A stretch of DNA of 58,417 nt, counting the filler, from Bipalium vagum (lineage: Eukaryota): the NCBI GenBank assembly GCA_037834085.1. It is 3 parts of 3 records of this genome, joined end to end, with 100 filler letters (N's around TTAATTAATTAA, not from the genome) between each part and the next. Parts side by side here need not be neighbours in the genome. Positions count along the whole stretch, not along the records: positions 16,720 to 41,355 come from JBBMKC010199386.1; 2 more parts are not named here. One strand, given 5' to 3'. A program made the translations under genes and the position numbers. A model generated the notes under the pieces. It saw nothing but the letters and a program-made list of their open reading frames with translations. It ran no database searches and had not been told where the DNA came from. Of this stretch, positions 17,801-41,355 are shown one piece after another. The number at the start of each line of letters is the position of its first letter. Positions within the stretch are counted from its first letter, which is position 1.

Positions 17801-20207
17801 AATGATAATAAATAAAATATTAATATTAATATTAATTATATTAGTAATAATAAAAAAAATAAATAAAAATAATAATAATAATAATAACATAATGAGTTAA
17901 ATTCAAATATTGAAAAAATTTCTGTTTAAATTAATACAAATTAAAAACAATACATCAAAAATATCCAGTTTTCGGCAAACCCAATACAGTCTCTGCAGAA
18001 TTATATTTACAGATTCTGTTGTCTATCAGATATGTTTAGCTCCATCAATAATTGCAAATATAAAGAGTAGTTTAAGGTGGGGACAGCGTACCCGAGCCAC
18101 TATCGGGAAATTGATTTCTCTAAATTTCTCTGCTCCACTGAACATCTGACAGTTTCCCTTAGGAGCCCGGGGTATTCACATTTCAAAACTTTCGTGAGAG
18201 TTTCTAAGGATATCGGCCATATCTTCTGACAAGCGATATTATCCATTTTTGTGGCCACCTGTTCGGCCAATTGAGTTCGATCTAGTTCCAAACAACTTGT
18301 CAACAATGGGATCACTTCAGTTACATTTCCAACTATGTAAATTAAGAGAAGCCATTCACTTTTGGTTACTCATCAACAGTATGAATTAATTAAGGGTTTT
18401 CGGGACTTGTTTTAACGTACTCATTCGGCATAACATTAATATACACTCGTCCAAGTCCAATAACGAGACAAGTGTTCGGAGTAGAACAATTCCTTCATTA
18501 TCATATAAACCTGACTTCTTTGAACAAATAATTAATTTTTGGGCCCTAGGCCCTACTTGTTAAAGCCAAATATTTGGTCGTGAATATGAATATTTGAATG
18601 AAAGATCGAACAAACATTGTGAAATCATCATTGTCTGACTTTCCGCAAAACATTGATGGAGATAAAACTATAGACATTCTGATACCAGACGTGTGCTAGA
18701 AAGTCACAGAATGTCGACTCATCGAAAGGTACTAAAAATAATACCAACCAAGCATGGGGGAATGATAGGAAAAGATTGTTATCATCACATTTCTTCACCA
18801 TATCTTTCATCTTTCGGACTATCTTCATTACCACTCTATGTGAATTCATTTCATTTATCTTCAGCATTTGATTCATCCGTTATATGATAATTAGCTCTCG
18901 TCATTCAAAGCCATTCGTATCACTTTAGTCATACTCCCCAGTTTGTGCTTATCATTCCCATCAGGGAATTTTGGCATTTCTTCACCGATTTTTCCCATTT
19001 TTCATAAGTATCCGTCTAATCGTTTAATATGTATTAGTTATTCATTATTCTTCTGACATCAAAATTATTGACTTTCTTTCAGAGACATTCATCGACCATT
19101 TATCAGAAATTTTTATAAGTCTTCAAACAGGTAAATGTCCTTCAGCTCATTTGATAGATTTTGTTTTTTAGTCATCAAGTATTCCTTACTCTTCTCAAAC
19201 ATCCTCACCAGTCCTCAGAAAGTCATTATTTAAATCATCACCAGCAGCCAGTTTATATATTATTTAAAGTAATTTTAAAGTAAAGCATCTTCTTTTTATT
19301 TTTGAAGAAAACACTTTAAATCTATATCCTATACCGTTGTCCTCGTAGAGAGGTTTTATGTAAGCCAGTAATGTTTCGGTAAGTAAGCTATGTATCATTA
19401 ATCGGCGAATGCTTTTAGTACTGTGGTGTAGCTGGTATAATTGGAATGATACGAGAAAAAACATAAACGTTGTCATAAATCACTGTTATACCAAATCGTG
19501 TCGTTTGAAAGACTGCCTAACCCTTGTACAATGTGAAAGAAGGTAAAATAAATCCACATAATTTTTACAGGTTTTATTTATTTTAAAAAACAACCAAGCA
19601 AACTGTTACAATTTTTATCATGTCCCAACCAAAATGAATATTTTTGCGTTGCTAACCAATGACGCTTCAATTATTACATCATTTTATAAATGATTTTTAT
19701 ACAAACAAGTAATGTTACATAAAATGTAGACAATAATGGACGTGACTCTTGAAATTGTTAATAATCACTATGACAAAACCACTCGTCAAATTTCAGCAAA
19801 ACCTCTGTAACCGATAAAGTTATAGTGAGCTCAAAATTCGAAGAATTGTTTATCTTTCTATTGGATAAAAGTATTGTAATAATAATAATAATAAAATGAT
19901 AATAAATAATAATATTAATAATAATAATAAAATTAGTAATATATAACAAAGCAATACTGAGAAATATGTTCTTTAAATTATTAACTTTGTAACTGTTGCT
20001 CTTAGATTAAAATTAATAATTGGAGTTTGGATTTACTAAATTTAGATCATTATTACTGCTGTTATGGATTTTGTAAGTTGCTCATTAAATTATTTTTATT
20101 AACACTAATAATTACTTAGTAGTACTAATTACTCATTGATAATTTTATTACAAATTAATTATTTTTAGATATTAACATTTTTTTATCATTATTTTAACAA
20201 TTTATTA

Positions 20208-21345: not shown

Positions 21346-22317
21346 TTTTACATTTAATTGATTTAATTTTGCAAAGTGCGTGAAAAGGCTTTGTAAAGCC
21401 TACTTTCTTATTTTTATAATTCTTAACGTGTGTGAAATTGTATCTTATGTTCAAAAATATTAATAATTAATATTTGTGTTCAATTATTAAAGAATAAGAT
21501 AAAATAAATATATAAAATGTGAGGTTAAAATATTAATTAAAATATAACCCACGTGATTAATTATTATTATAAAAATAAAGCAACTTACTATAAAAAAAGG
21601 ATGTTGGAGTAAATTTACTAAATATACTAAGTTCTATGATATAAGTAATTACTAGAAATAGTAACCACTTACCCATAATTCTATTATTAGGAAGTAAGAC
21701 TTACCTGAAATAGAAACCACCCATACATGAATTTATTATTATTAAGTTAAAATGAGAAACTCTAGAATTTGGAAAACAGGAGTACATAAACTCTTGATTT
21801 TCACATTCAAAATGCCTTTAACAACTTAGAATATGATTTGATATCTAGTCAAATAAGCTTTTAAGACGCCGGTAATAATAAAAAAGTAAATAATTTGTAT
21901 TAATTCTAAAAGTGTTTAACCGATAGTGTTAAATAAATAATTAATTAACGTTTATTTAGTGATAGGAGTTAATTCTTCTCAACCCTAACTTTTTAATATT
22001 TTCTGATATTCTGTTTTCTTGGTAATGCAATTCTGCATCGCTCTATGCGACAGAATACGCATTTCTGTTAACAGGACTTCTTCGGCTATCATAAAGTTGT
22101 CGGTTTAACCAAGGGCATATCCCTTATAACCTTTTAACGTTTTAACCTCTTAAAATTTAACTTAAAGATCGCAAAAGGGTCAAGGGTAAAATAATTTTAA
22201 TAATATTAAATAAAAATAATAATTAATTAATAATTATAGTTAATTTTAAAGTTCATGATAATTATATTTTTCAGGATCTAATCTTGGTAATTGCAAAACG
22301 CGATAAAGTGTTGTATT

Positions 22318-22794
22318 CAGTCCTTTGCACAAACGATAACTCCGAAGTGTAAGGTCATTGTGAACAATTGACTGAAGACTTGAACGAGAAATTTGGAGAT
22401 TCTTTGCCATTTTATTCAAACTGACCCCATCATTTCTAGTGATTCGTTTTTTGATGATTGCACGATTTCTTCTTGTATTAACAGTTCTCGGTGGACCAAC
22501 TTTTTTCTTTTCCGCCACTGTACCCGATATTTTCCATTGTTTCAGGACGTTATAAACCAATGAAATCGAGCAACTACGCCTTGCTGCAATAGCAGAGGAT
22601 TTCATATTTGATTGGCTCAAATTAATTATGGCCTCTCGACACGAAGGAATTTTTACCATATTTGAAATATAAATAAAATTAATATAAAATCAATGTAAAG
22701 TATTATTTAAAATTTAAAACTAACTAATTATATGCAAAGAAATGACTTTAAACATATTTTTTTATTTTTACACGTACTTATCGGCCACCGAATA
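22318..22794 (-). mobile_element. Tc1-mariner (maT/DD37D-like) 5' fragment: paired HTH DNA-binding domain and TIR
   Basis: ORF 22246-22659 (REAIINL...SLVYNVLKQWKISGTV....GPPRTVNT...IKKRITRN...SLNKMAKNLQISRSS...IVHNDL.LRSY); TIR-like TATTCGGTGGCCGATAAGTACG at the right end; catalytic domain absent. Confidence 0.8.
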
Positions 22795-24669
22795 TTGTAA
22801 TTTTCTTTGATTTGCGCATACAAACTTTTTTATAGCTTCTGAACCTGAGATCCTCTTCTTTCTATTCTTCTGACGTAGGTTCTGAATTTTATTACTTTTT
22901 CCGACTTAGATAATTCTTGTACAGATTTTCTTAGACTTTTTCTTTTCTTTTTTTGTTTTGAAGAATTTCTGACCGAAATTTCGCCTTAGATCGCCAATCT
23001 ATACTTTTGAAAAGCCATTTCCTCCAATAGTCCACCAATGCTAAGATCTGTGTTATACTATCTCGACGACGAGATTAAGTTATTAAATTTTATATCATTA
23101 AATCTCGTGATAGTTCTGTTTATATTATATATTTTTTGTTTTAGTACGTTTGAATATTTAACCTTTTTCTACTGAGTGTTTCGAAATATAATTTTTCAAT
23201 ATTATTTTATGATGGAACCCTTTAATGAAGAAACATTCCTATTACATTATTATACTTTCATTTGTAGCTAAATTAAAACGGTTCTGAAGGAGACAAGAAG
23301 AATTCTCCAGCTTATGGTATAAGAAATATTTGAGACATAATAAAAAGTTAATGATTAAATATTAAAATTGTGAAGCTACCTAATAGTACTCTGTATTTTT
23401 ACAAGTAAATTTGATTGGCTGTTTATGTCTATCATTTTTAGTTGAATGAAATAGTGACCGAGGAAATGAGAAAGTGAAATAAGTGACGGTCAAATACAAA
23501 TTTGTTGTACATACTAGTGGAATTTCTTTTTTTCTGTATTATTACTACACCATGATTTTTTCTACCCCAACGAAATCGTGATGAAATTGGTGGACATAAG
23601 TTCACTAATTCAGTTCACAGTAACCTTAGAATAAGTCAGCTGCTTTTATTGCAAATTGCGTAATTTTATTTTGGATATTTCTCTCAAGATAATCCATTAA
23701 ATTTCTGTTTCAAAAATTTTCATTTTTTTCAAACAATCGTTTTTTTAATGATCAATAAAAATGTTTTAGCAGAAATAGAAATTTTAATTTGATGATTTCT
23801 TTTCAGACTGAATCTATAAGTGAAAATTGAAATTAACCGGAATATCCTATCCGACAATTGTCTCCTTTATTTACTCTTAATATTACAAAATTAAAGTGCC
23901 CATATAAAATGAGATTTTCAACAGTCTAGGGACGAGCAGCAAAAACGACTACGACCTCGCATGTGTACAATGAAATAAAAAAATAATATCCAAACTTGAT
24001 AATTCTTTGCTTCGACAAAAATGATACTTAGAACGTATATATTATAGTATAATTATACAAAGAACTGACTAATTCAAGAGGATTATACCATATTGTGACT
24101 AAGTGTTTCTGTAATATGAAAAGAAACTACAAGTATTATTATTTTCCCTAAGACCAAAATAAGTACATTTCTCTTAGAAATAACTGCCTTTAAGCGATGC
24201 ATCAAATCCTGATTCACCAGAAATCTTATGCACCAATCCGCAAATCTGTCTACAATTCTCATCAATTTGGGAAAGCCGTTACACAATAATTAATTTGAAC
24301 AATGAAACGTTTTCGATAACAGGAAAGGGTGAGCAGGAAATTGTCTTACGACACTGCCAATGGCAAATGTCTGTTTATTAATCAACTGTTACATCACCGT
24401 TGATGCCAATTACCGTACGGTTAATGGAAATATTTCCTTCTCAGATTTACAATGACGATGTTCCATGCTAACAAATCTATCAAATAATTGCTTGGGAAAA
24501 ATCCGATTTTCAGCGAAACCCAGGAAATGGTCGACATCAAACAAAGTGTACAAGAAAAACACGTTATTTATCCACCAATGAAAACGCGTTTCGAAACATT
24601 ATAATTAACGAATGAAAACGAGAAGTTTGTTTAAATGTATTCTTTGTTCTTTTCAAATTGTATGATTAA

Positions 24670-33100: not shown

Positions 33101-35906
33101 ATTTCTTTTTCAAATTTTACCAGAAAAACTATTTTTAAATTTTAAAGCCAGAAAAATTAATCAAACCTTATGTATTCATAAATTTATGGATTTTAATGCT
33201 GTTTATATCAATCAGTTATGAGAGGATTCAATACTATCCAATTCTACTTTTTATTATATCATGGATTCCAGATCGAAACCGACGGTGGTTATCTCAAACT
33301 CTCTATTCCATGTGATTAGTTTTTAACATATGTCGGTACTTTTAAATAAAAATCCATTAAATACTGGTTTGTAGTTCAGAATATCCGGTTCATGATATAA
33401 TGATGATATTTGTACAATGATTAAAACGAAATCAATGAACTGTTGACTAAACCAACCAAATAATTATTTAAAAGTTAATACCACTGTAAAGATCGTTTAT
33501 CTTTATGCTATCAATCTAGACTCGTTGGAAAAATGGATAAAATTAATACAATCACAGATAATTATCAAGATTTTATAAATAATATTTTCCCGAAAACACT
33601 GAAAATATTTTCTTCTATTAATATAAATCTTAATTAAGATAATATATTTTGGTTCAACCAGTCATTATTGAAACTGTGAAATGTTAATTAATGAATTTAA
33701 AAATGGTAAAGATTAAATATTTTGATAAGCCGAAAATATTTGATTCGCAAATTTAGCGAGAAATCAGTTCTATTATTAATTCATCCATTTAGAGGAGTCT
33801 TTTAGAACTCTATGCCGAATATATTTAGAATAATGTGAGAATAAATTTTTTAAAAAAACTATTTTTATAGATTTATTATCATTAGATAATAATAATAATA
33901 ATTTTTCAAATTATGTCAGTGTCACTGCTGAATAAAGCAAATATTATTTTTCAAAACATTTTCTGAAAGTTAATAATCCACAATATTTGTGAGATAACAT
34001 ATTCCAGAGGAAACTCTGGCGGTTTTGTGATGTGTTATGTTATTGAACTTCATTGGCATAATATTTTTATGGTCTAACCTGGTGGTATCGTCATAATAGA
34101 CTGGATCGCTGAAGATTGACCAAGGAAAACTGTTCTAATTCTATCGTTATGGATTCCTTGAGATATATCTCCTTTAGATGTATAGACTGTTTTTCCCCCG
34201 ACGATATCCACATGTTAGCCTGGACCTGATGAAAACAATTGCGCCAAAGAAAACAATAGAAAATCAAAAACAAATTCAAATAATATACAAATGATAAATA
34301 AGAACTTAACCAAATCGCCAATTAACTTTATTTATGATCTTGTAGTAACCTGTAAATTAATCGCTGTAACTTAAAAATTATTTAGGATCATCAGATATGA
34401 TGTAGGGGGGGATATTGTGTAATCGCTATTATCAGAATTTAATGAACCAAATATTCACCTGCATTTCGGCATTTGTTGTCATGCATTTTAACGATTGACA
34501 TTTGACTTTTCTTGTGATGCTTGTGAAAAATCAATTTTACACCATATATTAAAATGGGATTTCATTATTGCAGGTGTGACAACAAGTGAAACAGCTCTCT
34601 AAAAAATTGGATACACGATAAATAATTTTTTTTGTCTATAACAAGGTATAACCTTACCCTTATAATAGAACATGTCGTGGATAGCAGAATGAATGATACA
34701 GTTACAAGAATTTTCGATTGTTATCAAAATTGGAATTGAAATTTTTCAGATTACAATAATTCATAAAAACAAGTCTCGGGTATTAAAATAATAACACGAA
34801 GAAAAGAGATGTAAAATGTGAAATTGGTAAATAATAAAAATAGGGAACATTATTAAGAAATAGGTGACTTTTAATTCTATAAATAATTCCTGAAATCGGA
34901 ACCTGTAAAGCATGATTAATAGAAGACAATTTCCAAAAAAGTATGTTACAATTATTGAAAAAATGAGTATTTTATTTTTATTAGTAATTGGGGACGAAAA
35001 TAAACATTTTCCGGCTTTATGCATTTTATCCCAACTAATGATAATTAGGAAGCCAGGAAATTTTAAAAAATCATGTTTCAACTTATCGTTGGGCATGGCA
35101 AAAAATCAGTTGACTTTTAATTTTCTTTCGGTTAATCTCGTTTAAAAAATATGTAGGCCTGAAATTTATTTTGTTAGAAAATTTAATTCCTCTTCCACAG
35201 TAAACCCCTTTCTTCGAAATTGATTGTCACAGAAATCTGAAATCTATCGATGCCAGTTAAACACGGGCTAGAGAAAGGTAAATTTATAATCACCAATGGG
35301 TTAACAAAAATTTTACGATAAAATTGCACAAGGAAAACAAATGTATGAAAAACACCTATTTTGTCCTATAACATCCGAATCTGCACAAGTAAGTGGTTTA
35401 CATGTGGTGAAAGTGACAGGACAATTAATGCAAATTAAGCCATTGTCAAGCTGTGACTGTCGTTAGGTTATCGGCGATGCGACACTGGAGATGAATTGAA
35501 CCAGTCCTAGTTTTAATGATTAGGTGATTCATGTTGTAGACTATTCACAGAACATGTTGATTTACGACTTGATTATCCAAATCAGGTCGTAAGAGATAAA
35601 ATCGATCTCGTTCCATTGAACTGTCCTATTAATATCTGCTGTCCCTGGCTTATAAAATGTCAACTAAGATGGCTTTATGTACCCCTACATTTTTATAAAT
35701 TTTGTTTTTCTCTTTTGGCTTATTTACCGATTTGTTATTAATTCATAATTAATGGTTGATTTCTAATTCAATCCCTCTGTGTGAAGAATCAATTGTATAT
35801 TCGATAAATTTTTTACTATTTTTTTTATCTATATTTTACAATTCTTTAGCAAAATGAATTTTTTCTTTTTCAAAAGAAAATGAAAATTAATTGGTAATTT
35901 TTTAAG

Positions 35907-36063
35907 TCGAGCCATAAAAGACGGAAATAGTACCAGTGGATCAGAACTTGCTTGGTGTCCAAAGGGACCAATTGGGCCCAACTCAAAGGAATTTATCCAA
36001 GTTGAATTCAATAAATTGGAAATATTGTGCACCATTTTTACTTATGGATTGGACAGTGGAAAT
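35907..36063 (+). CDS. DDR-like gene exon 3: discoidin domain core
   Basis: TTTTTAAG acceptor (phase 2), AAT|GTAATC donor; reads RAIKDGNSTSGSELAWCPKGPIGPNSKEFIQVEFNKLEILCTIFTYGLDSGN, matching the DDR AWCP......E(Y/F)LQVD.......TQG signature. Confidence 0.9.
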
Positions 36064-36997
36064 GTAATCAATAAATAAATTAATTATTATTTATATCATT
36101 TATTTCAACTGACAAATTTTTTTGAAGATGCTCTGTCGATTTAATCTTTGTCTTTGTTTCAATACAGGGTTCCATGGAAAAATTAAAGAATTTTAGAATA
36201 AAGTCTCTCATCTTCTGTTGTTAAATAAAACTTTTAATTTTTAATGCAAATTTGACTCAAATTATTTATTTATCAAAATTTATTTTTGTTAATTAGGAAA
36301 GATAATTGAAGTTCTATTTGGATCGGAAATTTTCAATATATTTCATTGTTATTAATATTATTATTAATACGTATAACGTTTTATAACATTGAAAGAAGAA
36401 ATTTTGCTTCATAATTTGTAATATTTTTGCTAAGTGAGTATTGACCTCCAATCTCAGGTCATTCCAATGAAATCTATGTAGTGTCAAGCATATGTTATAG
36501 GTTTAGTGGTTTTTCATTTCGCCATGTCTGTAGTGACTTTATTGCATGAACGAACCATTTGGCTAACGTCCACCGCAATTAGTAGATCATTAGAAAAAGT
36601 AAAGAGTGTCTATAGAAGTCTTAAAGGAAAAATAACTCAAGACAATTAGTTTCTATCAGCAATTGTTCAGTGTTAGAGAACTTCATTTCAACAATCAAAT
36701 TGAAGAGTAAATAAAGGAAAATACTAGATTTTTCAATTAAATTTATTGGCTTCATGTAGATAATATATGAAACTTCAACTGGAAAATCAATAATAAGCAC
36801 TCAAAAACTGATTTTTAAATTATTTTTGGTCAATGAAGTATAAACTTTTCTAAAAAATCCATAAGAAGGAAAAGGTTATGAATGTTGATTTTTATAATAA
36901 ATATATTAATAAAACATAATAAAATTGATTTTTGTATACCGAAGGTAGTCCTTAAAAGGATTTAGTAAAAAATGTAATCAATGTCGTTGTTTCCTAT

Positions 36998-37122
36998 TAT
37001 AGGAGTACGCAAAAAAACTTCATTTTTACAAAATTATATTTTAATTATATATTATTATAATATTATAAAATATGTGTTTGTAGTAATTTAGAAAAAACGA
37101 AGTTTTTTTGCGGACCCCTATA
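36998..37122. mobile_element. Small MITE (~125 bp)
   Basis: ~38-bp imperfect TIRs TAGGAGTACGCAAAAAAACTTCATTTTTACAAAATTA / TAATTTAGAAAAAACGAAGTTTTTTTGCGGACCCCTA with TATA-type flanks. Confidence 0.75.
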
Positions 37123-38169
37123 TTTATGAAGTTTGGTATTCCGTTTGCTCTATATTTTAATGATATAATATTAATTTTTTAAAAATCTTTTTATATATAA
37201 TTTTTTTTAATTGTCTAAGACAAAAAGGGTGGCATATAATGGTTATTATTTGTAACAAAAAACACAGATCATTTAATTATTAATGATGTCAACAATATAG
37301 AACTTGAGAAATAAATCTCTTAAGAACAAGATTTCTACATTGGTGGCATATTTCTGAAAATGGTCTCATTTTTAAGACAAAACCAAAAATTAACACGCCT
37401 TCAAAATAAAAATGTAGTTAATCAAATTCCTCATTTTAAACGAGAGGGGTTATTTATGATTGGTCTTAATGGAATTTTGTAATAAAAATAATTAAGAACC
37501 ATTATTGGAATTTTCGTTGAACATGAAAAGAAAATAGTAGTCTATTTTTGCTATCGGAAAATATCGATGAAATTTTAAGGCATTGATTAGCATTTAGAAA
37601 AATTCTGGAAATTACTGAATGGTTTTCTTTTTACATATTTACTTGTTTGTTATTGTCATGTTATGTTTATTTACTTTCGTGTGGAAAAGTTAACGTGTTC
37701 AGTTTTTTCAGAATTTGTTTACTCTTTCTCTGAATCATTCTGCCATTTTTGTTGACAAGCATTTATTATCGTAGAACGATTCTAAACTTTTTGCGAATTT
37801 GACATTGTTTTTCAAAAATTGTATTTATAGACCACATTTAAATGGTCAAGCCTTAAAGATCTGAAATATAATAATGATATATCGTTTTTTTTAAACCAAT
37901 TGAATATTTTTTACATTCCATTGCCGTAAATCAGATAAAGTATTAATAGAGTTTAATATTTTTTCTATTTGTGGATGGTATTGGTTTATTATAATTTTCA
38001 TAGATTCATTATCATCTATAGTGTATATTGATTATAGTGTTTTCGATTTTTTAAAGCTTTTGATGACTAACAAAATTTTATTAATTTATTATTATTATTG
38101 AATTAAATCGATTTCATTTTTTGATTATTTTGGTCGTCTTAAGCTTTTATATAACGTTTTTTTAATTAG

Positions 38170-38259
38170 ATTGGGTTTTTCGTTAGCAAATTCTATCTGG
38201 ATTATCAAAGAGAAGATGGTAATTATTGGCACCGATACAGAAATAATACTGGGAGTTTG
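38170..38259 (+). CDS. DDR-like gene exon 4: discoidin domain
   Basis: ATTAG acceptor phase 0, TTG|GTAATA donor; IGFFVSKFYLDYQREDGNYWHRYRNNTGSL matches discoidin F...Y.L.YS.DG..W..Y. Confidence 0.88.
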
Positions 38260-38836
38260 GTAATAATTTTATATGTTTATTATTCATCAAAGTAAATGTT
38301 AAAAATGAAGTAATTAATAATAGAAAATAAAAAATATCAGATCGAAAAATTATTTTAATAATATTTTTCCTGTTGTTTTTGAGTGTGTCATATTTTTTTC
38401 AGACAAGACCATAAATTTTTCATATGATATTTACAATTGAATATAATGACAACACTTGATTTTTTGTTCTTGATTTGAGAATTATAAATACATTAATCAG
38501 TAATTTTCAAGAGTAATCATAATTCTTTTGTGTTGCCTTGCAATTAATATGAATATATTTTATGATGTATAAGAAATTGGTGGAAAACACATGATACGGT
38601 GACGGAACATCTGACTTGTGTTCATGGAAAATGTATTCATCATTTGTCACAGTTATGTAATGTATTTTTTACAAAAAAGGAATTTAATCAAAATATTTGA
38701 TTGTGTATAATGAAATAATGATTTTTCTAATATCCCATTCTTCAAACTTTGAGGCATTGAACTTTCCTGAGGAATTGTAAATCAAATAATTTTTCTTTAT
38801 TTTTCTCTTCTGCAAAACTGGAATTCTTGAAAAAAG

Positions 38837-38851
38837 ACAGCCTTAATTAAT
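38837..38851 (+). CDS. Candidate 15-nt in-frame microexon (TALIN) of the DDR-like gene
   Basis: Pyrimidine tract 38791-38810, TGC at 38811, first downstream AG at 38835-36, ACAGCCTTAATTAAT, donor GTTTGT; phase 0-0; three TGCATG downstream. Confidence 0.5.
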
Positions 38852-41279
38852 GTTTGTGCATGTACCTTATGTCTTATTTTTTGACTCATGCTATAACAGA
38901 ATCAATCATTGTTACCAACGTTACCATGTGACCGACTGTTCGTGCATGTTTTCACGTGGGTGTTTTGCTTCGTTTTTAATTCCTCATGTGTCATGCATCA
39001 AATTGCATTCATTCATGCATGTCCTGCTTTGTTCGCTGCTCAGTGCATTTGTCTGACCTTTGTATTCCGTTGAAAGATAATTCTGTCGTTACTTAATCTT
39101 GTTTTTACTACATTCATTAATTTACATTTTTTTCAATTTCACGTCTTTATTTTGTTTTTATTTCACATTGATTTCACAAATTCAGATCAATTTTCATTTT
39201 AATTGATTTTATATATAACTGTGATTTTATAAAATTTATTAATTTTTTTTATAATCAAAAATATTTAAAAGAAATTAATTAATATTTTATTTTTGATTTC
39301 CTTAAAATAATTAAAAAATTTTCCTTTAAATTGAAGTGAATTTTTTCCCTTAGTAATAATTGTTAAAATAATATCATTTTTTTATTAATTTTAAGTTATT
39401 TTTTCATTGAAGAAATTCATTGTACACAATTCCAATATAACAAATGCAAATATTCCTATTATTTAATAAAATTAGTTAATGATCAACTCGTTCATAATGA
39501 TGAAGATAATTTCATATATTATTCTTATGTTACGCACCAATTAGTTTCGCTATAATTGGAATTGCAATTTGCATTGTCCGTATTCGTGTGTATTATTATC
39601 ATTTATATTTTCTCCATTGTGTTTTTCGATAGTGCAAATTTCTGTAAATAGATTTTTCTTTGTCAAATTTTAAAAAAATATGTACAAAAAAGCTTTTTAG
39701 TATTAAAATTAAATTAAATCAGCGTGTTAATATTTAAAATATGGTTTCGATAAACAAGAAAAAAGATAGAATTTCAAAAGGAAGAATGATTGGTAAATCA
39801 CGAAATTAGAAGTCTGTTGTTTATCATTAGAAGGCATATATATATAATGTATACAAAAAACCTTTCTTATATATTCCTAACATCTTATCAAGAGTTAAAA
39901 TTTTTAAATCAATTAAATTTTCACTAGAAATTTTTTATATTTTCAATGATTCCAGCTATTCTTAATTATGTTCTAACAATTTTTAAAGTTTTTTTTAAAT
40001 ATTTGGTTTTAAAAACGTTTGAAAACAAATCTTTGGGGTAAAACAAGTGGAATATTAACTTCATTATTTAGCTAAAATTTTATTGGACAGTAATTTTCTA
40101 AAATGTAAATAAAATTTCTAAAAAATTTTTATATTGTTTGAATTCTGAAAATGTTTTGAGAGAATTTTTTTTAATTAAAGAAAACGCTTAAAGATTCAAT
40201 TTGTATATTTAAAACATATTAAAATGTTAATTATACGTTACAATAATTATATTATACATTGATTGGTCGCGTATTAATTTTGCTTTTCATCATAGATTCT
40301 GAAAATTGAACCAAATATTTTTTCACAATTAAATTATTTACCATTTTGACATTTAATATAAATATTTTTAAAATGTGTCCTTTGAAATATCAAGAAACCA
40401 AATTAGATTAGTTCGCCTAGGTGAAGATCAGTTTTAATTTATTTAATTAAAAAGCAAATCGACCACAAGTTTGACCTAAAATGTAAAACCAATTTCTATA
40501 ATTATAGAATTCCCACTATCAAGTTGGTAGATTTAAGTTAACCTTTTAATAGGACATTCGTAAAGATTTTAGCTGGCAACATAAAATAGTGATTTTCTTT
40601 TTTACCTATGAAAAATTATTTCTCCATTAGAAATTCGAAAATGTAATAGAAAATACATCCTGTGAAATGCAGAAAAACCGAATGGTCATTTTATGTAAAT
40701 AAAAGTTCCACAATGATAATTTTCTAACTTAACCACGATCTTCCTCTATTTGAACAATCAGTAAATATTGATCATTGTAATATCTTAATATTTATACGTA
40801 ATAGTAACAGTAATTCTTTTTTACTACAATAAATAAACAAATCCTTATAGTATTCCTTATAAACATTTCCACCTTCTTGATTTCGTTTCTAATATTTTCA
40901 GATTCATGAATTATCCGAAATCCCATAAATAGTACTTTATTTTTGTTATAACGTTCTCCAGTTTATCGACTCGCTTTGTCAAATGAATTCGTGACGCTGT
41001 CTGATTTCTCTCAATATGATCAATTTACTATCCAAACTGTCCATCCATGTTTCAGATCCAGCAGTCATTCTTATCGTCTTTTATTTCTTCTTTTAGCAAT
41101 ATCAACGAAATTATATCATAATTTAATATTATTCAGTTATTCAAAGTTATTATTTATAATGTTAAGTAATTATTATTAATTAATTTATAATTGTGCAGTC
41201 TTAGAGATGAAGAAGACTTCACTAGCGCTTAACTTTATAATATTCACTTGAATCCCTGTCCTAAATTTAAACGCAGATT

Positions 41280-41295
41280 AATAATAATAATAATA

Positions 41296-41355
<60 letters not shown>
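41280..41355. repeat. (AAT)n microsatellite
   Basis: Direct reading; runs into the gap. Confidence 0.95.

Follow-up and report, generated by a model that had tools for sequence, protein, structure and literature searches.

A microexon-like 15-base segment beside a TGCATG cluster in a discoidin-domain gene of Bipalium vagum may be an unused pseudo-exon

Fly eMIC exons are described as having very weak 3' and weak 5' splice sites, long AG-free zones and a UGC near the 3' site; they also carry tracts rich in UCUC and strong CUAAY branch sites, and the introns that flank them are short (PMC8797185). A planarian study counts 262 microexons, 72 of them of ≤15 nt, reports that many planarian microexons are mbnl-dependent, and places rbfox-1 in these animals (PMC4978528); a regulated microexon is therefore a reasonable idea for a flatworm. 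The Snap23 microexon is reported to be controlled by MBNL, QKI and RBFOX2 (PMC12064062). Here we describe a 15-base segment of the flatworm Bipalium vagum that shares many of these features. It lies in a 58,417-nucleotide stretch of three joined records with filler between them (assembly GCA_037834085.1; hereafter, the window), within the intron that follows exon C of a gene with discoidin-domain exons of the discoidin domain receptor (DDR) type. The piece that carries it, positions 16720-41355, is one entire contig of 24,636 bases (JBBMKC010199386.1); the assembly is fragmented, with 272,664 contigs making up 440 Mb.

We hold, with moderate confidence, that the segment is a pseudo-exon, set in intron sequence that is either neutral or a relic, and we infer that it goes unused. 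According to this explanation, an AG and a GT in the long C-D intron would by chance bracket five sense codons, and the island downstream would be single-copy intronic DNA in which the palindrome CATG is frequent. The three TGCATG(T) motifs in that island would then be either a chance cluster of a kind expected at the scale of the scan or a relic of an older inserted sequence. The explanation is favored because of the GTTTGT donor, the weak acceptor, 38 rival segments in the same intron, a symmetric distribution of GCATG and YGCY at its expected frequency, as well as the lack of a cluster in paralogs, the occurrence of chance triplets genome-wide and the commonness of GC islands.

The first-pass annotation had proposed a microexon from a pyrimidine tract, a TGC, an AG-free spacer, a first AG, a 15-nt phase-0 segment and a GTTTGT donor, and each of these is present at coordinates that can be read directly from the sequence:

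38790-38810, plus strand: pyrimidine tract with one TCTC (C or T in 20 of the 22 bases of 38789-38810)
38811-38813, plus strand: TGC, directly 3' of the pyrimidine tract
38772-38834, plus strand: AG-free zone, ending at the candidate acceptor gaaaaaAG (first AG at 38835-36)
38837-38851, plus strand: candidate phase-0 segment ACAGCCTTAATTAAT (TALIN), 15 bases with no stop in the frame set by exon C
38852-38857, plus strand: candidate donor GTTTGT, whose +3 and +4 bases are both T

We compared the candidate splice sites with real ones. The homology-anchored donors used are those of exons B and C in the window and of exon C in five paralogs (L014, L015, L016, L021 and L022). All seven real donors read GTA, whereas the candidate reads GTTTGT, with a T at +3. 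A T at this donor position is rare in animals, and it is a heavy penalty on the microexon reading. At acceptor positions -4 to -9, the candidate has one pyrimidine in six bases versus three to six in the seven real acceptors, making it the weakest of the eight; over -4 to -15, it has 5 of 12 and ties with the weakest real acceptor. Immediately 5' of the candidate AG stands the purine run AAAAA. No CTAAY occurs within 38772-38835, CUAAY being the fly consensus, which may not be that of the host, and the nearest CTAAT (38727-38731) is 5' of two AGs (38752 and 38770). The first TGCATG overlaps the candidate donor at position +6, and the introns flanking the candidate would measure 577 bases and >2.5 kb.

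Segments of this general kind are plentiful in the 3,096 bases of the intron on the contig, where 38 competing frame-0, stop-free AG..GT segments of 3 to 54 bases were found. One at 38900-38941 on the plus strand is a 42-base in-frame, stop-free segment (NQSLLPTLPCDRLF) whose acceptor, ctataacag (CAG), is better than that of the 15-base candidate, and whose donor, GTGCAT, overlaps the second TGCATG. We defined the upstream layout, after the candidate had been seen, as at least 18 pyrimidines in 20 bases, then TGC, then a first AG 5 to 40 bases on; each strand of the 24.6-kb piece has one instance of it, that on the plus strand being the candidate. A search of sequencing runs for this stretch returned one DNA run (X1) and no RNA run. 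The contigs of X1 have eight listed joints, which are low-complexity, and none falls at 36063/38170, 38259/38837 or 38851.

Beginning at the candidate donor, the intron becomes richer in GC and carries the TGCATG motifs:

Starts at 38857, 38943 and 39016, plus strand: three TGCATGT, at +6, +92 and +165 from the candidate donor
38887, 38992 and 39014: CATGC(A), which reads as GCATG on the minus strand, within the island
38852-39060, no strand assigned: GC-richer island, GC 0.40, with eight CATG and one CACGTG (38953-38958)

Two observations of the first-pass annotation hold here without change, as TGCATG is present on the plus strand at all three positions and the GC content of 0.40 over 38852-39060 exceeds the 0.06 to 0.30 of neighboring 50-base bins. 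Its estimate that far fewer than one TGCATG is expected per 170 nt is right for background composition; 16 other loci of the genome contain 15 TGCATG in 101,834 strand-bases (∼0.025 per 170 bases). At the island's own composition, the expectation is ∼0.5. What is in excess underneath is the palindrome CATG, which occurs 8 times in the island versus 3.0 expected (P=0.002). By strand, GCATG is found three times on each and TGCATG three times on the plus strand versus two on the minus strand; the TGCATG signal is strand-specific in part only. The YGCY motifs put forward as an MBNL feature show no enrichment in 38852-39060 (5 versus 4.2 expected, P=0.42).

No terminal inverted repeats were found around the island other than AT-rich low-complexity pairs. 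The best Rfam E value was 6.2 in 38300-39500, with no matches at gathering score across the piece, and no RNA fold signal was detected in the island on either strand (z-scores of +0.48 and -0.64). The searches run with it returned no protein similarity.

The five paralogous introns between exons C and D, 9.6 kb in total, contain one TGCATG and no cluster, indicating that the cluster is not a trait of the family. The C/D junction region varies in both length and sequence among these five paralogs and may, on that basis, be a tolerant loop. Across the genome, three TGCATG at gaps of 50 to 80 bases gave 166 matches versus 24 for a reversed-pattern control, and the control count implies that triplets of the same composition arise dozens of times at this single spacing. 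The majority of the 100 matches listed, out of 166, are tandem repeats. They are mostly on short contigs of ∼150 to 400 bases (such as C7960, C104457 and C114960) with tandem units of 16 to 70 bases, and these contigs show that satellites make up a large part of the assembly. By arithmetic, the genome should contain tens to hundreds of chance TGCATG triplets that fit within 170 bases, whatever their spacing, so that a scan of ∼1,000 windows would meet several of them.

Several results weigh against a pseudo-exon. The assembly has just one copy of the island, which is not a repeat. The 24.6-kb piece has five TGCATG on its plus strand, three of which fall within 165 bases (38857-39021), and the three in 38852-39060 compare with a mean of 0.52 in local dinucleotide shuffles (P=0.011). 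Three TGCATG within 170 bases were found at none of the 16 other loci, that is, nowhere in the same 101,834 strand-bases, and the longer TGCATGT occurs on the gene strand alone (3 versus 0). The sole plus-strand site with the upstream layout is 22 bases 5' of the first TGCATG, and the segment bracketed between them is frame-keeping. Weak 3' and 5' sites are, moreover, described as typical of fly eMIC exons (PMC8797185). Together, the rare upstream layout, the frame-keeping segment and the rare TGCATGT cluster are beyond chance for one contig, but the constellation was picked by eye out of a very large amount of sequence. The motifs and their local rarity are established, as are the gene and its exons.

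The interpretation first proposed is that 38837-38851 is a tissue-regulated microexon, with an eMIC/SRRM-type code upstream and RBFOX enhancement downstream, that adds TALIN between exons C and D; judged from sequence, this seems unlikely. The layout is complete at the sequence level, and the segment would keep the frame at a C/D junction that is phase 0 in all five paralogs. Its insertion point is the same junction region that varies among paralogs and may be a tolerant loop. Weakness of both splice sites belongs to the fly code, as do UGC, tracts rich in UCUC and an AG-free zone of some length (PMC8797185), and 72 of the 262 planarian microexons are of ≤15 nt (PMC4978528). These points are set against a donor with T at +3 where seven of seven real donors have A, an acceptor with AAAAA directly 5' of its AG, an AG-free zone without CUAAY and flanking introns unlike the short ones of fly eMIC exons. 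The overlap of the first TGCATG with donor position +6, the symmetry of GCATG on the two strands, the unremarkable YGCY count and the 38 competitors in the same intron count against it as well. The Pfam model SRRM_C (PF15230) had no matches at E ≤ 1 in the 272,664 contigs, although this short domain may be intron-split or beyond the model's reach. We conclude that the evidence on a microexon is mixed and leans against it. We likewise give low credence to the fuller version, in which a lineage-specific DDR-type paralog would have gained a 15-base microexon that is read through an eMIC-like code despite GTTTGT and boosted by three UGCAUGU. In that improbable case, TALIN would precede the strand opening the last discoidin-domain exon.

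There is some chance, though a minor one, that the island is an intronic splicing element bound by an RBFOX-type protein via (U)GCAUG and controlling an exon other than the 15-base segment. The target would be exon C, which is 600 bases upstream, exon D, which is off the contig, or another small exon such as the 42-base candidate at 38900-38941. The three gene-strand TGCATGT within 165 bases (P=0.011), the setting of a GC-rich, single-copy island inside an AT-rich intron and the presence of rbfox-1 in planarians (PMC4978528) are consistent with such an element. GCATG is, however, equally frequent on the opposite strand, the five paralogous introns lack the cluster, and chance triplets are expected genome-wide. 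Pfam Fox-1_C (PF12414) had no matches in the assembly, in which a short domain may be intron-split among 272,664 contigs, and skipping of exon C would presumably delete core strands of the domain. A DNA-level control element, either an enhancer or a silencer within the intron built on CATG-core and E-box sites, is an alternative of similarly low probability. It would fit the nearly strand-symmetric excess of palindromic CATG (8 versus 3.0, P=0.002), the one CACGTG at 38953-38958 and an island that is GC-rich and single copy with no RNA structure or coding signal, but TGCATGT is strand-specific (3 versus 0), and a single E-box is expected by chance. Finally, it is very improbable that the island belongs to an exon so far unannotated, be it in an untranslated region, in an RNA that does not code for protein, or in an alternative last exon running from the 38836 acceptor to the TGA at 38882-38884. 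Three plus-strand frames are open for 38 to 69 codons across the island, and translation in frame from 38837 yields a short tail before a stop is reached. The open frames can be attributed to a low A content, which counts against an exon, as do the lack of protein similarity, of an Rfam family and of a fold signal, and truncation inside the discoidin fold would be expected to yield a non-functional product.

That the host gene is real is shown by the two discoidin-domain exons of DDR type on the contig. They and the adjoining intron are as follows:

35907-36063, plus strand: discoidin-domain exon B (RAIKDG..LAWCPKGP..FTYGLDSGN), acceptor ttttaag, donor AAT/GTAATC, phase 0 at its end
38170-38259, plus strand: discoidin-domain exon C (IGFFVSKFYLDYQREDGNYWHRYRNNTGSL; exon 4 of the first-pass annotation), acceptor aattag, donor TTG/GTAATA, phase 0 at both ends
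38260-41355, plus strand: on-contig portion of the C-D intron, 3,096 bases; the contig terminates in an (AAT)n run

In tblastn searches, exon B matched the library proteins P0002 and P0003 at E values of 3e-5 and 2e-6, respectively, and exon C matched P0002 at 0.003. All four matches of exon B among solved structures were to DDR1 (4ag4) or DDR2 (2z4f, 7azb and 2wuh), at E values of 9e-5 to 3e-4; Pfam F5_F8_type_C was recorded on this exon under the cut-off (E value of 0.22). Exon C matched factor VIII alone among solved structures, at no significant level, and its counterpart is present in five paralogs. No kinase or transmembrane part was found on the contig, which stops 3.1 kb past exon C. 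The label of DDR receptor given by the first-pass annotation is thus half supported: the discoidin exons are DDR-type, exon B matching DDR1/DDR2 alone among solved structures, but the contig is without a kinase or transmembrane part.

A search of representative proteins with exon B returned five matches at E ≤ 0.001, among which the discoidin proteins are P0002 (from Lingula, a brachiopod) and P0003 (from an ostracod) only. Identity to these two best library proteins is 35 to 45%. No ortholog candidate came from word searches that used exon B or the 68-codon open reading frame (ORF) of the island. In the genome itself, there are at least 25 discoidin-exon matches over many contigs, from which we conclude that the window gene is one member of a large family, either DDR-type or discoidin in general. 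Five paralogs have a common layout of exons B, C and D:

L014, L015, L016, L021 and L022, on contigs C101170, C62343, C36221, C37637 and C266642, respectively: paralogs with the B/C/D layout

Their C/D junctions are in phase 0 in five of five cases, and their C-D introns range from 438 to 4,204 bases. For the window gene, searches for the next exon (D type, F/L-x-G-N/P..P-I-I-A-R) returned only chance-level matches 3' of 38260 on the contig (tblastn, E ≤ 100). Another contig, C156956 (L006, positions 1 to 330), opens with a (TAA)n run, which is followed 85 bases on by a D-type discoidin exon (GLKEVLKGPNDPFLDAYETLDPPIITRWIRIYPYS..), and it may be the continuation of the window contig past the (AAT)n at 41290-41355. 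The D exon on C156956 resembles the L016 subfamily and not L022, the nearest paralog of the window gene, which counts against continuation. No upstream exon A was located on the contig, where a weak match at 22851 is without coding context. Just 5' of exon B, 35250-35760 is a single-copy, GC-richer island (0.40) with a consensus-like donor, CAA/GTAAGT, at 35390; it could contain an upstream exon, and no discoidin exon A was recognized within it.

GC content along the contig varies between 0.17 and 0.31 per kb, and we counted six GC islands in the 24.6-kb piece, including 38852-39060. One of the six is inside a transposase-like ORF of 137 codons at 22249-22659 on the minus strand, with sub-threshold matches to HTH_23 (E value of 1e-4), HTH_28 and the helix-turn-helix domain of Sleeping Beauty transposase. 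This ORF is probably an N-terminal fragment of a Tc1/mariner-type transposase, as judged by these matches. The GC-richest island of the piece (0.46) is at 17970-18369, and inside it, at 18092-18172 on the minus strand, is a chance-level match to the last discoidin exon (..GN..INFPIVAR, E value of 5.6). In the intron between exons B and C, the summed depth of DNA-run contigs reaches ∼1,000 at 36940-37167 versus 4 to 80 elsewhere, and many partial contigs end at 37084-37124. This pattern points to a short, high-copy, AT-rich repeat.

Were the 15-base segment a microexon after all, it would represent tissue-specific remodeling of a collagen-receptor-type binding domain and would show the known microexon code to reach into an animal lineage that has been little studied, with eMIC and RBFOX signals at work outside arthropods and vertebrates. 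Going by a text search of the literature, in which no paper linked a microexon with a discoidin domain receptor, it would also be the first described microexon within a discoidin domain. If it is a pseudo-exon, the locus illustrates how frequent short in-frame AG..GT segments are in AT-rich introns, here about one per 80 bases, and that motif constellations picked by eye need RNA or comparative support before they count. The CATG/TGCATG-rich island is the sole part that deserves a second look.

Compared with known systems, the candidate is closest to the eMIC microexons of SRRM3/4 and fly Srrm234 (PMC8797185). Its 15 bases fall within the 3 to 27 nt of that class and keep the frame, and it shares a UCUC tract, UGC, an AG-free zone and weak splice sites; it differs in its long flanking introns, the T at donor position +3 and an AG-free zone without CUAAY, although the branch-site and short-intron features are those of flies and CUAAY may not be the consensus of this host. 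Like RBFOX-enhanced cassette exons, for example, that of Snap23 (PMC12064062), the small candidate exon is followed within 170 bases by three gene-strand UGCAUGU. Unlike in such exons, GCAUG is equally frequent on both strands and the first of the three sites shares a base with the donor; neither an excess of YGCY nor the YGCY clustering near the exon that goes with MBNL is seen here. We conclude that, as a sequence, the candidate resembles an eMIC-type microexon with RBFOX enhancers and cannot be classed as one, because its branch-site and intron-length features depart from that type. As for DDR1/DDR2, the contig of the host gene carries just two of the domain's exons and lacks any kinase, transmembrane or DS-like part, and the motif AWCP..(F/Y)(I/L)QV(D/E) is common to both receptors and to the gene of exon B.

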